Virus record (IMG/VR): IMGVR_UViG_3300005965_000002
Coordinates: 124,001 to 188,000 of that record
Direction: 5' to 3' (one strand)
DNA: 64,000 bases
Part shown: positions 13,633 to 26,643 of the stretch, one piece after another
Layout of the letters: every line of letters starts with the position of its first letter
Numbering within the stretch: position 1 is the stretch's first letter
Program-made: the position numbers and the translations under genes
Notes under the pieces: generated by a model
Told to the model about the DNA's origin: nothing
The model's database searches: none
What the model saw: the letters and a program-made list of their open reading frames with translations, nothing else

Positions 13633-16600
13633 ATGGAAAATGCCCTTAAAAAAGGATTAAGCTTAAGTCTTATTGTGGGCCCCGGTGAATCCTCTGAGCT
13701 GGAGAGATGTTTAAAGTCCTGTATTGGATCATTAAACGGGAAAAAGGATCTTTTTGATGAGATAAACATCACATTTGCTACAAAAAAAGAAGACGATAAA
13801 GTCTGGGAGGTAGCAAAAAAGTATGGTACTAAAGTTACGAGATTCGATTGGATAAATGATTTTTCTGCTGCAAGAAATTTCAACTTCAACCAATCAGAGA
13901 TGTCTCATATCTTCTGGGTAGATGCCGATGACGTTATAAAGCCCGAGCAGTACGATAAGTTACTGGAAAGAAAAGAACGTATCTATCAGTTAGATATGAT
14001 TTTAATTTCCTACGTATACGCGCACGACAACGAAGATAAACCTGTCATAGTTCTACCCCGCGAACGAATAGTCAGAAATTGCCCTCAGATAAGGTGGGAG
14101 GATCCGATACACGAGTACCTTCCCATGCTAGCAAACTTTAAAATGCAGGAATGGAAAGATTTAGCGCTTGACCACTATCGGATGAAACCATTTAATCCGG
14201 AGCGAAATGTTTCCATACTAGCGGAACAGTACAAGAAGCCTACCTGTACACCTCGGAATAAGTTTTACTATGGAAAAGAATTATTTGATATACAGCAGTA
14301 CGATAAAGCTCTTCCTATTCTTGAAGAATATGTAAACGAAGGAAAAGATTTCCGAGATAATCTAACGGTTGCTTGCATAAAACTAGCAACGTACTATTAC
14401 GTAAATAATGATAAGCCCTCTGCAAAGGATTTTGCTCTAAGGGGTATGCGGTTTAATAGTGAGTATGCAGAGAACTACGTAATAGTAGGAGATGTGTTAG
14501 CTGAATCAGGATTGTTTGATGAGGCTATCCAATATTATTCAGAAGCATCCGGCAAGAAGCTAACCGGGGGTATGTCTCAGCTAGTAGATTATTACGGGTT
14601 TATTCCGAATTATCGTTTAGCCGTGATGTACGCCAATAAGCGGGATTATAAGAAGTCCAAGGAATATGCCTTACAGGCATTGGAAATAAAACCTAATAAT
14701 CCTGAATTAAAAAATTTGGTAAACCAATTGGACACCAACATCTCTGAGAGCGAAAAAGAGAAGGTAATGGATGAGAACTTTGTAAATGAGTTGCAAAAGT
14801 TCTTGTCTGACCATAATTTTTCCTTAGCTGTTGAAGAAAACAATTCTTTCTTTGGAAGAATAAAACTTTCTGTAAAAAAGAATGTTTCTATAGCCTGGAT
14901 GTTGCCTGGTATAAATCCAGAAGATCCTGCCACCCGTATACGTCGGTTGAATATAAATAAATATTTTAACGATAACTCTGTCGGTGTCAAAACATGTATA
15001 GTAACCAATTATCTCACACTGTCTCCTTATGAGATAAGAAACAAGATAGGCGAGAGCACCGTAGCTGTTTTTACGACCTATACCTCGAAGGATAAGGAAG
15101 CAATAGATTATCTGAAAAATATAGGAGTACGAGTAATCTATGATATCGCTGAAGCCATCTTTGATATGCCGGGTGTTGCAGAATGCCTGAAATTAGCGGA
15201 TGGTATAGTATGCTGTTCCGAGAAGCTTGCAGAAATGTGTATGGAAAGAGGCCTGCGGAATGTAATGGTTATTAAGGATGCCATAGAAAAGTGGGCTCCA
15301 GTAAAAGAACACAAAGAAATAGAAAAACCAAAAGCTCTCTATATGGGTATGGGCGGTAACAGCTTTCTTGTTACAGAATTCTTAAAAGACACAATTACTG
15401 AAGCTGGTTATGATTTAGAAGTAATTACTGAATGGGATGACGCTACTAAGAAATGGTCATTGGAAACCTGGGCGGAAGATATGGTAGCGTGCGATGTTGT
15501 GTTATGCCCCCAAAGAGTTGACGTGCAGCCTGCGAAGTCGGACGTTAAGGCCTCAGTAGCAATGGCATTGGGAATGCCCGTTATAGCCAGCAGCCTGCCT
15601 TCTTATAGAACTATAATCAAAAATGGTGAAAACGGATACATATGCGAGACTAAGGACGATTGGAAAGAAGCTCTGATTAAATGCAAGGATTATAAACATA
15701 GAGCAGAAATCGGAAAGAAAGCTAGAGAATCTATAAAGGATCATAGCATAGAAAAAGTAACTGAGCAATGGAAGCAGGCTAGCCTGGAAACTCTTGAGAG
15801 TGAACAGACAAGCGTTCAGATCCAGCAGTCAACTCCAGATAAAAGAAGAGACATTGTAGACATAATCATTCCTAATTATCAGAATGTAGACTATTTGAAG
15901 ATGTGTCTCACATCGATAAGGATGAATACACTTTATCCTTATCATATCATCATTTCGGATGCAGGTAGCAATAAAGATACATGGGAGTACCTTAAGTCAT
16001 TAAAGGGAATTACGATCCTCGGCGAGGAGGGTGTTAGAAAAACATATTCCGAAACATGCAACACCGGGATAGAAGCGTCTTCTTCTAAGTTCTTTGTGAT
16101 TATTAATTCTGATATTATCGTGTCCAAGGGTTGGATTACAAATATGATGGACAAGATGACGTCAGTTGATCGATTAGCTGCCTGCGGAGTCCTATCTAAT
16201 TGTGATAGAGGGTGGCTGCACAATGTCCCTGGCAGAGATGACATACCGCAGTACCCTATGCGTTTAGAAAAAGCAGGAATAGATCTGGTTCCCGGCATGA
16301 AGAAAGATCAAATAGCTCCTCATATAGAAGAGCTGTACGCTTTTATGGATGCCTCTAACAAGAGATACAAAGGAAAATTTACCCCTCAGAAATGGGTAGC
16401 TGGTTACGCTACGGTATATGCACGCAGTGCTATTAATGAGGTCGGTCTCTTTGATCCTAGATATAAAAATGGGTGCGAAGATTCAGACCTTTGCTATCGT
16501 TTAGAGAAGTGTGGCTATGCCATGGGTCAGGCTATTGATGCTTTTGTTTTCCATTTCGGGGGCGTAAGCAGGGGTGCTTATCAAGATGAGGGGCGGGAGC

Positions 16601-25000: not shown

Positions 25001-26643
25001 GGGATACAGGAGTCCAGGGTATTCAAGGTGAAACCGGAGTCCAAGGTGACCAAGGCGAAACCGGAGTGCAGGGAGAAACTGGAGCTCAAGGAGAAACTGG
25101 AGTACAAGGTATCCAGGGTGAAACCGGAGTTCAAGGCTTTCAGGGAGAAACTGGAGTCCAGGGAATACAAGGTGACCAAGGGGAGACTGGTATACAGGGT
25201 ATTCAGGGAGAGACCGGAGTACAAGGTATACAAGGGGAGACTGGGGTACAGGGAATTCAGGGTGATACTGGTGTTCAAGGAATTCAAGGTGAACAGGGAG
25301 AGACCGGTACCCAAGGTATTCAAGGGGAAACCGGTGTTCAGGGTATTCAGGGGGAAACCGGTGTTCAAGGGGAGCAAGGTGATACAGGTGCTCAGGGAGA
25401 GACCGGCACCCAGGGAGAAACAGGTTTACAAGGGGAAACTGGAGTTCAGGGTATTCAGGGAGAAACCGGAATTCAAGGTGACCAGGGCGAAACAGGTGCC
25501 CAGGGAGAAACCGGAGTACAAGGAATCCAGGGTGACCAAGGTGAAACTGGTGTTCAAGGAATTCAAGGTGAGCAGGGAGAAACCGGAGTACAAGGAATCC
25601 AGGGTGAAACCGGGGTCCAGGGCACCCAAGGAGATACAGGTGTTCAAGGTATTCAAGGCGACCAAGGTGAAACCGGGGTCCAGGGTATCCAAGGTGACCA
25701 GGGTGACACTGGTTTACAAGGAGAGACCGGGGTTCAAGGCATACAAGGGGAAACTGGTTCCCAAGGAATCCAAGGTGAAACAGGTATCCAAGGGGAAACC
25801 GGAGCTGAAGGTGAAACTGGTGTACAGGGCGAAACCGGTGTGCAGGGGATTCAGGGTGATACTGGAGTTCAGGGAGAAATAGGAGCACAGGGTGAGACTG
25901 GGGTTCAGGGAGAAACAGGTGCTCAGGGTGATACTGGAGTTCAGGGAGAAATAGGAGCACAGGGTGAGACTGGAGTTCAGGGAGAAACAGGTGCTCAAGG
26001 TGAAATTGGAATTCAAGGGGAGACCGGAGAACAGGGAATCCAAGGAGAAACGGGTGTCCGAGGTGAAACCGGAGCACAGGGAATCCAGGGGGAAACCGGT
26101 GTTCAAGGTGAGACTGGAGTCCAAGGCTCTCAAGGGGAAACCGGTGTACAGGGAGAAACCGGAGTCCAAGGCGTCCAGGGAGACCAAGGAGAAACCGGGG
26201 TACAAGGTATCCAAGGAGAAACTGGAGTACAGGGTGATCAGGGAGAAACTGGTGTACAGGGCGAAACAGGTGTCGATGGTGGTGCCTCTGGATCGATACA
26301 ATTAGTAATAGATGGGGCTGGCTCCGCCATAACAACAGGAATAAAGGGCGACCTTAGATTACCTTTTGGGATCACCATTACAAAAGCCACTTTATTAGCA
26401 GATCAATCTGGTTCCATTCAGGTCGATCTTTGGTATGATACCTATGATAACTATCCGCCTACGGATGCCGATAGCATTACGGCTAGTGCTCCTCCGACGT
26501 TATCTTCGGCAGTAAAAAGTGAAGATTCCACCTTAACCGGGTGGACTACATCTCTTTCCGGTGGGGGTACAATTAGAGTAAATGTTGATAGCGCTACTAC
26601 TGTTACTCGTGTGACCTTAATCCTAGATTACAATAAGAGTTAA
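22003..26643 (+). CDS. Collagen-like fibre protein (about 1280 aa of G-X-Y) with globular N- and C-terminal domains
   Basis: G-X-Y repeats aa ~144-1426 dominated by GET/GVQ/GIQ; C-terminal [19 protein letters not shown]...SIQVDLW knob; TTG start with ggaggt RBS. Confidence 0.92.
23356..24623 (+). repeat. About 250-bp internal duplication in the collagen gene (23356-23606 and 24373-24623)
   Basis: Near-identical nucleotide blocks offset by 1017 bp (339 codons), both including the [10 protein letters not shown] interruption. Confidence 0.85.
25852..25995 (+). repeat. 72-bp tandem duplication in the collagen gene
   Basis: cagggtgatactggagttcagggagaaataggagcacagggtgagactgg... repeated at 25852 and 25924. 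Confidence 0.85.

Follow-up and report, generated by a model that had tools for sequence, protein, structure and literature searches.

Does a phage that encodes both a multi-domain glycosyltransferase (GT) and a long collagen-like fibre use the one to glycosylate the other? The question is raised by a 64,000-nucleotide stretch of DNA (hereafter the window), bases 124001-188000 of the 258,580-bp single-contig IMG/VR virus record IMGVR_UViG_3300005965_000002. Here a four-domain GT of 1384 amino acids (aa) (P0001, 13633..17787) and a collagen-like fibre protein of 1546 aa (P0002, 22003..26643, TTG start) are encoded on the + strand, the collagen gene lying 4.2 kb downstream of the GT gene. An original prediction, made from the letters of the window, had placed both genes at these positions about 4 kb apart and had likened the pair to the glycosylated BclA collagens of spore surfaces; the placement and the spacing both hold. 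CheckV estimates the record to be 55% complete, and the full genome should therefore measure ~470 kb. Our answer is that the collagen fibres are a well-supported candidate for the acceptors of P0001, a reading to which we assign a probability of roughly 60%.

The evidence starts with the N-terminal module of P0001 (aa 9-359, 13657..14709, +), which combines a GT2 catalytic domain with a C-terminal half resembling tetratricopeptide repeats (TPR). SgtA of C. difficile is a 358-aa enzyme made up of a GT-A domain (aa 1-260) and a TPR region (aa 262-358); its gene lies immediately upstream of bclA3, and the enzyme has been biochemically proven to put beta-O-linked N-acetylglucosamine (GlcNAc) on Thr of the GAT and GPT triplets of BclA3 (PMC7157674). 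We located sgtA in a 4.1-Mb genome via its neighbour: 43 bp downstream lies an open reading frame (ORF) with two published BclA3 peptides, MSRNKYFGPFDDNDYN and VGPTGPMGPRGRTGP (PMC7157674, Table 1), of which one is the N-terminal peptide, found at the start of the ORF. This ORF contains 144 Gly-X-Y (GXY) triplets, 76% of them with Thr at Y. With P0001:1-400 as the BLASTP query, residues 9-359 aligned with SgtA 11-352 at 32% identity over 355 aa (E 4e-54), a match that covers both GT2 and TPR, and hhalign returned a probability of 100 (E 5.4e-48). By these alignments, the module is an end-to-end homolog of SgtA.

The two proteins have in common the motifs DFSAARN (F.W..DFSAARN), W.DADD, RER and IHE, as well as YGFIP in the TPR-like half, and the same signature motifs align with GmaR. 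A DxD motif is present, and D97, D99, H160, E161 and H181 are invariant in 22 of 22 family members, the phage enzyme included. Among PDB sequences, the best matches of the family profile (residues 7-254) are GmaR (E 1.7e-24) and SunS (E 5.6e-20), far ahead of other GT2 enzymes. GmaR is the flagellin O-GlcNAc transferase of Listeria and SunS a peptide S-glycosyltransferase, and both act on protein or peptide. In a quick tree, the phage modules are monophyletic and nested inside the bacterial family.

The bacterial members of this family point to collagen as the usual partner. A scan of 185,579 species genomes was used to collect the best 80 bacterial relatives of the module, which share 27-34% identity with it and belong almost entirely to Bacillota (Clostridia, Bacilli). 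A collagen-like ORF, defined by at least 10 triplets, lies within 1 kb in 49 of the 80 loci (61%), and in 41 of these 49 it is within 300 bp and on the same strand; in a further 4/80 it is found farther off, within 8 kb. The collagens near bacterial relatives have a median Thr share at Y of 0.63, many reach 60-98%, and giant open frames occur among them (2102 aa in Viridibacillus, 1249 aa in Brevibacillus). Bacillus, Priestia, Viridibacillus and Brevibacillus all carry SgtA-like genes beside Thr-rich collagens. By comparison, only 4 of 14 control genomes contain any match to the collagen family at all, and the GT family is therefore mostly, though not exclusively, collagen-partnered. Adjacency of SgtA-like and collagen genes across Bacillota is a general rule that we have not previously seen stated, and its presence in 49 of the 80 closest relatives widens what was known experimentally from one species. 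The likeness to BclA glycosylation, put forward as an analogy by the original prediction, has thus become homology (to SgtA) together with a conserved gene neighbourhood.

Behind the SgtA-like module, the chain of P0001 continues to give the domain order GT2, TPR, GT1/GT4-like, second GT2 and GT4. Pfam recognizes GT2 twice (at the N-terminus and at 744-869), TPR at 327-356, and GT1/GT4 twice (~612-713 and 1033-1383). The first GT-B domain, which is GT1/GT4-like (aa ~415-720, 14875..15792, +; Pfam Glycos_transf_1, Glyco_trans_1_4 and Glyco_trans_1_2; phrog_7162), has many invariant residues in the family alignment, and the canonical EX7E motif is not evident in it. The second GT2 domain, of the GT-A type (aa 742-975, 15856..16557, +; Pfam Glycos_transf_2, best stretch 744-869), shows invariant D776, D827 and E949-D950, and its PDB profile matches are chondroitin synthase and GalT1. 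In the last domain, a GT4 of the GT-B type (aa ~1010-1384, 16660..17787, +; Pfam Glyco_transf_4 and Glycos_transf_1; phrog_2170), E1287 is invariant and E1295 nearly so, an EX7E-like spacing, and the PDB matches are PimA-like. These three domains presumably extend the glycan. Homologs of them were found near bacterial SgtA-like genes in only 2 of the 80 loci, and the fusion is therefore not a copied bacterial operon. No hydrophobic or transmembrane segment is present in P0001 (maximum KD19 1.36), indicating a soluble enzyme.

About 90 full-length four-domain homologs of P0001 occur in metagenomes, at 44-77% identity and on contigs of up to 469 kb. A near-identity DNA search of GenBank phages with the GT gene gave no match, and tblastn against the same phages gave distant matches only. 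For the comparison of GT neighbourhoods, 21 related IMG/VR loci were fetched, and tblastn synteny shows that the gene order around the GT is kept in them. In a clade of huge (~470 kb) phages, the P0001 gene belongs to the conserved core and keeps one syntenic position; in related phages, two genes take its place there, one for GT2-TPR and one for GT1-GT2-GT1. Some orthologs measure 1765-1803 aa and carry intein and LAGLIDADG domains (for example P0019, P0024, P0033, P0036, P0038 and P0043, and L047:11773-15402). Inteins usually occupy conserved, important genes. An extra methyltransferase domain is found on the orthologs P0045/L001, P0064, P0066, P0077 and P0089. The genome of the window also has a second, stand-alone small GT2 gene outside the window (G000:C1:7918-8823, - strand, a 302-aa open frame).

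The proposed acceptor, P0002, is dominated by its collagen region (aa 123-1428, 22369..26286, +; Pfam Collagen, E 2.6e-188), in which we counted 423 GXY triplets, distributed over 17 runs of up to 188 triplets each. If fully triple-helical, this region would measure ~360 nm, calculated at a rise of 0.286 nm per residue. The Y position is held by Gln in 185 triplets (44%), by Thr in 171 (40%) and by Pro in only one, while the X position is mostly Glu (107), Val (67), Ile (64), Ala (43) or Pro (36). Pro makes up 3.4% of the whole protein. The hexad G-E-T-G-x-Q predominates, and the DNA that encodes it consists of degenerate tandem repeats of 18, 27, 36, 54 and 90 nucleotides. The collagen is thus as rich in Thr at Y and as poor in Pro as the original prediction had described it, and the GET, GVT, GPT and GAT triplets that it named are real.

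Both ends of P0002 are phage modules. The N-terminal domain (aa 1-105, 22003..22317, +), delimited by family alignment and tblastn, belongs to a phage-specific family that, in the same slot of relatives, also stands alone as proteins of 134-178 aa. PHROG and Pfam scans of this domain gave no match. It is paralogous to the N-terminus of the structural protein encoded at 27773-29305, and the AlphaFold2 (AF2) model of this paralog family shows a beta-sandwich at residues 1-102 with a predicted local distance difference test (pLDDT) score of ~85; the domain of P0002 is presumed from this model to be an immunoglobulin-like beta-sandwich. In relative L047 the fibre slot encodes an 838-aa protein that joins a P0002-type N-terminal domain (E 3e-17) to five GXY triplets and a beta-helix-like body.

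The C-terminal domain (aa 1432-1545, 26296..26637, +), identified through PHROG, AF2 and Foldseek, was modelled as an eight-stranded jelly-roll with a pLDDT of 92.8. It matches phrog_35197 (2e-37) and phrog_10330 'virion structural protein' (9e-11), and Foldseek places it at a template modelling score of ~0.5 to the cement protein of phage KHP40 and the tail fibre of phage 7-7-1. This ~115-aa jelly-roll has no Pfam family, and its PHROGs are annotated only as 'unknown' or 'virion structural'. A library of 1.84 billion proteins contains 10,441 cluster representatives of the domain, typically at the C-terminus of fibre-like proteins. Collagen is found in only 10 of its 150 best relatives, and many relatives are 65-73% identical in this domain despite wholly different upstream architectures. 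A tblastn search of GenBank phages with the domain gave no match, though the search at the level of hidden Markov models had returned thousands. P0002 looks like a modular virion fibre because it has its N-terminal domain in common with the beta-helix protein in the L047 slot and ends in a widespread fibre C-terminus; its sequence follows the pattern of this protein class, with a conserved N-terminus, exchangeable distal parts and a distal domain shared with fibres.

Three small collagen-bearing proteins are encoded elsewhere in the same genome, outside the window (G000:C1:211144-212220, 226492-227148 and 227177-228406). Each has 13-15 GXY triplets with ~40% Thr at Y, and two of the three end in PKD-like C-terminal repeats. 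Homologous small collagen proteins are present in relative G001.

Besides the window itself, 11 of the 21 related clade loci have a collagen ORF no more than 10 kb from the GT. At least three arrangements occur: collagen in the downstream fibre slot (the window and L014), directly upstream of the GT (L010-L013, L016-L017), or on both sides (L021-L024). Large collagen ORFs, the longest of 4452 aa, are found in each of the three clade genomes with a completeness of 90% or more. Throughout the clade the Thr share at Y of the collagen ORFs ranges from 0.27 to 0.52. The composition noted by the original prediction is therefore real without being unique to P0002, being typical of the clade collagens and of the bacterial BclA-like neighbours. 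The GT is coupled to a Thr-rich collagen gene in these phages, more loosely than in bacteria.

Of 67 viral loci that have SgtA-like modules but fall outside the clade, 16 include a collagen ORF within 10 kb, and several of these are giant (1000-3300 aa). The distance is below 1 kb in 10 of the 16, where about one in ten would be expected from random placement within the flank. A sister super-clade, recognized by its shared marker protein and synteny and represented by 21 records of 100 kb or more, served as a natural control. Both the SgtA-like gene and collagen are missing from two of its genomes, which measure 437 kb and are complete with terminal repeats; three genomes have collagen without an SgtA-like GT, and these collagens are short or Thr-poor (Thr share 0.20, 0 and 0.05). 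In G092, 1.6 kb separates an SgtA-like GT from a collagen gene in the same orientation, which encodes at least 2350 aa and has Thr in 90% of its Y positions. The sister-clade counts and the bacterial data point the same way. Co-occurrence of GT and collagen recurs in several independent huge-phage lineages, and sister-clade genomes lacking the GT have no collagen or a short or Thr-poor one.

Other features of these phages were recorded along the way. The 416.5-kb contig of G092 starts and ends inside what seems to be one collagen gene (L286:11187-12539 and L287:3-5705), which suggests that the assembly broke in a repeat of a circularly permuted genome. Two phages without an SgtA-like GT encode a ~265-aa protein that joins a predicted membrane helix to a short collagen tail rich in Lys and Pro (L290:1531-2316 and L291:1598-2398), whose GDKGPx triplets are unlike the Thr-rich fibres. 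In MW202524, a 42.6-kb podovirus from a freshwater spring, a cluster directly after the major capsid gene (MW202524.1:3147-11978, locus L150) encodes a GT2-TPR-GT4 protein, gtA, a GT4, methyltransferases and another GT2; from its sequence, it is a candidate capsid-glycosylation system.

Within the window, the GT and collagen genes fall in a block bounded by the major capsid gene (94-975, 293-aa product) and the tail sheath gene (47522-50485). In the relatives, the GT is preceded by a set of small and medium genes of no assigned function and followed by four small conserved genes and a variable 'fibre slot', after which come the genes of a conserved 298-aa structural protein and of a beta-helix protein, then more virion genes. 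The four small genes (143, 94, 69 and 165 aa; 20027..21546, +) invariably separate the GT from the fibre slot in relatives, as tblastn synteny showed for 8-15 related loci, and the L047 homolog of one of them (ORF 20545-20829) carries DUF5659. PHROG and Pfam scans of most ORFs neighbouring the GT and the fibre gave no match. The structural protein downstream of the fibre (27773..29305, +) measures 510 aa here and ~298 aa in relatives, with 58-67% identity among clade relatives and 35% for the outlier L011. It combines the N-terminal beta-sandwich that it has in common with the collagen fibre protein and a helical body; ESM Atlas gave weak leads to neck/adaptor (connector/neck) families, and a fold search with the AF2 model of this family (pLDDT 66.7) gave no convincing PDB match. 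A putative mini-intein of ~216 aa (aa ~218-433, ~28424-29071), indicated by a weak Pfam Intein_splicing match, interrupts the protein; the L041 homolog is without this block, and the L038 homolog has a different insertion at a similar place.

Several other genes of the block are of separate interest. The major capsid gene is directly followed, at 1062-6000, by two large ORFs (656 and 679 aa) that flank one of 279 aa. In this group, C-terminal parts resembling DNA methyltransferases occur together with HNH, LAGLIDADG and DNA-binding homing-endonuclease domains; conservation in relatives is only loose, and the ORFs resemble mobile insertions. The sole large minus-strand gene of the region (29302-31731), present in only 4 of the 21 related loci, encodes an 809-aa protein in which homing-endonuclease-like parts (HNH and DUF7487) are fused to a Mom-like DNA-modification domain. 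A 411-aa protein (8434-9669) has a 2H-phosphoesterase/RNA-ligase-like C-terminal part (phrog_755), and its shorter homolog in L047 (5711-6286) has recorded Pfam matches to Acb1 (anti-CBASS nuclease) and 2_5_RNA_ligase2; the gene may serve in counter-defence. Downstream of the fibre slot, and kept there in 11 related loci, lies the gene for a 1131-aa protein with right-handed beta-helix, NosD and DUF1565 domains (36813-40208), which is tailspike- or depolymerase-like. Matching DNA was found in hypersaline-lake and microbial-mat metagenomes, and a search of sequencing runs for phage DNA returned DNA metagenomes only, with no RNA run and no proteome data.

A number of observations weigh against collagen as the acceptor. 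The phage is uncultured, and sugar transfer by P0001 is predicted from its sequence. Thr- and Gln-rich Y positions are common in prokaryotic collagens generally, so the composition of P0002 alone proves nothing. Of the best bacterial relatives, 27 of 80 have no collagen-like ORF nearby, as do 51 of the 67 other viral SgtA-like loci. The syntenic position of the GT is fixed in the clade while the collagen genes move. In the sister clade, a distant SgtA-like gene occurs without any collagen in G101 (94% complete), Fisher's test on this clade alone gives p ~0.08, and the counts rest on few independent events.

Several facts of this kind would also fit a P0001 that O-glycosylates other virion proteins (capsid, decoration, sheath or neck), with the nearby collagen coincidental. 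Nine clade loci lack a collagen gene in the 10 kb on either side of the GT, which itself stays 8-13 kb downstream of the major capsid gene throughout the clade. The complete podovirus genome MW202524 encodes a distant homolog (23% identity) directly after its capsid gene and contains no collagen. A precedent exists in mycobacteriophage virion glycosylation, as cited in PMC12582341. Against such an acceptor stand the ties of the characterized member SgtA and of 61% of the nearest bacterial relatives to collagen genes, the immediate GT-collagen adjacency that recurs in several phage lineages, and a capsid protein (293 aa) that lacks a Ser/Thr-rich extension. We regard this explanation as unlikely, though it survives better than the others.

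A second explanation, to which we give rather less credence, is that P0001 modifies a host protein or surface structure (flagellin, pilin, S-layer or a host collagen-like protein), for example to block superinfection. The best solved-structure match is the flagellin O-GlcNAc transferase GmaR. In the quick tree, which has long branches, the nearest non-phage neighbours of the phage module are a flagellin-adjacent GT pair and a gene without collagen nearby. The pair includes P0136, a stand-alone relative with 32% identity that adjoins a flagellin gene and a second GT2-TPR gene; its position near the phage clade means that acceptor switching happens in the family, a further point against collagen. 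The phage itself, however, encodes abundant acceptor-like sequence, and its GT gene sits among structural genes rather than early or moron genes. A flagellin BLAST of the flanks of the 80 bacterial loci gave no match (0/80) in a search that used one query and is insensitive.

Less probable again is an enzyme that builds or alters a non-protein glycan, such as host lipopolysaccharide (LPS)/O-antigen, teichoic acid or capsule. The source annotations of P0001 homologs read 'glycosyltransferase involved in cell wall biosynthesis', the same role has been assumed for other phages (PMC7029224), and domains 2-4 resemble GT2/GT4 enzymes of polysaccharides and glycolipids, generically only. The initiating module, by contrast, is a full-length SgtA homolog with a TPR substrate-binding half, P0001 has no membrane segment, and no match to NAD-dependent (sugar-nucleotide) epimerase/dehydratase was found in the 258-kb record (55% of the genome). 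Glycosylation of phage DNA as hypermodified bases against restriction can be set aside as very improbable: the window does contain the methyltransferase-domain ORFs and the Mom-like protein described above, and phage GT-A and GT-B enzymes do hypermodify 5-hydroxymethylcytosine, but those enzymes are single-domain and clustered with 5mYOX/TET or thymidylate-synthase genes (bioRxiv 10.1101/2023.12.21.572611), whereas P0001 has four domains and a TPR half that, like its SgtA homology, points to a protein substrate, its neighbours are structural genes or genes of no assigned function, the methyltransferase ORFs carry fused homing-endonuclease domains and differ from one relative to the next, and a Tet_JBP search of the same record gave no match, which is weak evidence since the controls were silent too. 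The alternative targets named by the original prediction, DNA and host LPS, are accordingly disfavoured.

Glycosylation of the phage's own collagen fibres could proceed as follows. P0001 would act as a cytoplasmic one-polypeptide glycan assembly line for protein O-glycosylation. Late in infection, the soluble enzyme would bind nascent or folded fibre chains through its TPR half, and the SgtA-like module would recognize the G-x-T repeats and place the first sugar on the Thr hydroxyls at Y. The three downstream domains (GT4-like, GT2 and GT4) would each add one sugar to give a short oligosaccharide, which the extra methyltransferase domain of some relatives could cap; the donor sugars would probably come from the host pool. 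The main acceptor would be P0002, with 171 G-x-T sites per chain and up to ~510 per trimer, and the three smaller collagen-bearing proteins encoded elsewhere in the genome are probable further acceptors. The fibre would join the virion via its conserved N-terminal beta-sandwich and present the common fibre-tip jelly-roll at its distal end. The glycan on Y-position Thr would stabilize the Pro-poor triple helix and clothe the fibre. What the analysis demonstrates is the domain architecture, the SgtA homology, the gene-neighbourhood statistics and the phyletic pattern. From these we infer transfer to Thr of P0002, stepwise extension, a role in stabilizing or shielding and the place of the fibre on the virion; helix stabilization and an adhesive or shielding surface are suggested by known collagen chemistry.

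A broader proposal, which we advance tentatively and at slightly less than even odds, is that the ~470-kb phage clade and several other huge-phage lineages carry SgtA-type collagen O-glycosylation. In the clade, the initiating module would be fused with three extending GTs, in some members also with a methyltransferase, and the fused protein would furnish ~0.36-micrometre fibres with a defined oligosaccharide at hundreds of Thr residues. The resulting mucin-like brush would stabilize the helix and form the outer contact surface, and these would be the first glycosylated bacteriophage collagens. If this holds, virion glycosylation would extend from mycobacteriophages to huge environmental phages, and there would be a concrete case of Thr-glycan stabilization of a Pro-poor collagen outside spores and the tube-worm cuticle. 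Glyco-engineering of recombinant bacterial collagens would also gain an attractive tool, namely a compact enzyme that assembles, with one chain, an oligosaccharide on a peptide of simple repeats. Papers on phage GTs default to DNA or O-antigen roles (e.g. PMC7029224). Against this routine annotation, the GT family found here points to glycosylation of the phage's own collagen fibres, and an SgtA-like GT together with a long Thr-rich collagen may serve as a predictor of glycosylated fibres in metagenomic phages.

Viruses that decorate their own particles offer a first comparison. Mycobacteriophages encode GTs that glycosylate their own virion proteins (Freeman et al. 2023, cited in PMC12582341). 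As in the window, their GT genes lie beside structural genes and the phage's own structural proteins are decorated, while their GTs are separate small genes. The acceptors in mycobacteriophages are capsid and tail-tube subunits, and we know of no collagen or SgtA-type module in mycobacteriophage glycosylation. Chloroviruses and Mimivirus are giant viruses of eukaryotes that use N-linked or hydroxylysine-linked chemistry. The Chlorovirus PBCV-1 enzyme A064R (GT-GT-methyltransferase) builds the virion glycan independently of the host, and the fibrils and collagens of Mimivirus are glycosylated (PMC9614988). A064R resembles P0001 as a multi-domain, virus-encoded GT, and a methyltransferase domain is likewise present in some P0001 relatives; as far as tested, the GTs of these viruses are not homologous to the SgtA-type module.

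GmaR and SunS (of SPbeta sublancin) belong to the same GT2 subfamily as the SgtA-like module, have a helical or TPR C-terminal part and use proteins or peptides as substrates. GmaR modifies flagellin and SunS a peptide Cys, and both are single-GT enzymes with no collagen partner.

The BclA proteins of B. anthracis and B. cereus are collagen-like filaments with a GXT-rich central region, a feature repeated in P0002, with Thr at Y in 171 of 423 triplets. The BclA nap of the exosporium carries rhamnose-anthrose multi-sugar O-glycans on Thr, methylated sugars included. P0002 differs in having neither the BclA-type exosporium-targeting N-terminus nor the C1q/TNF-like C-terminal domain; the Foldseek matches of its C-terminal domain are phage cement and fibre proteins, with BclA not in the top 50, and no rhamnose or anthrose pathway genes were found in the 258-kb record. 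On the strength of sequence and models, P0002 would work like BclA without being a member of the BclA family.

The closest counterpart is the SgtA-BclA3 pair of C. difficile. The two systems agree in a GT2 and TPR part of ~355 aa that is homologous end to end, in Thr at Y of the collagen and in genes that are neighbours. In the phage, the SgtA-like part is the first of four GT domains in a 1384-aa chain, the gene pair is 4.2 kb apart rather than adjacent, and the fibre, built on the GETGxQ hexad, has 423 triplets, more than twice the ~144 of BclA3. The phage fibre has phage-fibre terminal modules and belongs to a huge-phage virion instead of a spore. The first sugar added by SgtA is beta-GlcNAc. 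A literature search returned no paper on phages with SgtA-type enzymes or with collagen fibres that are glycosylated. The O-glycosylation of collagen Thr is thus the known part, as in spore coats, and the phage carrier, the fused four-GT architecture and the recurrent, hitherto unremarked association in huge phages are what the system described here would add to it.

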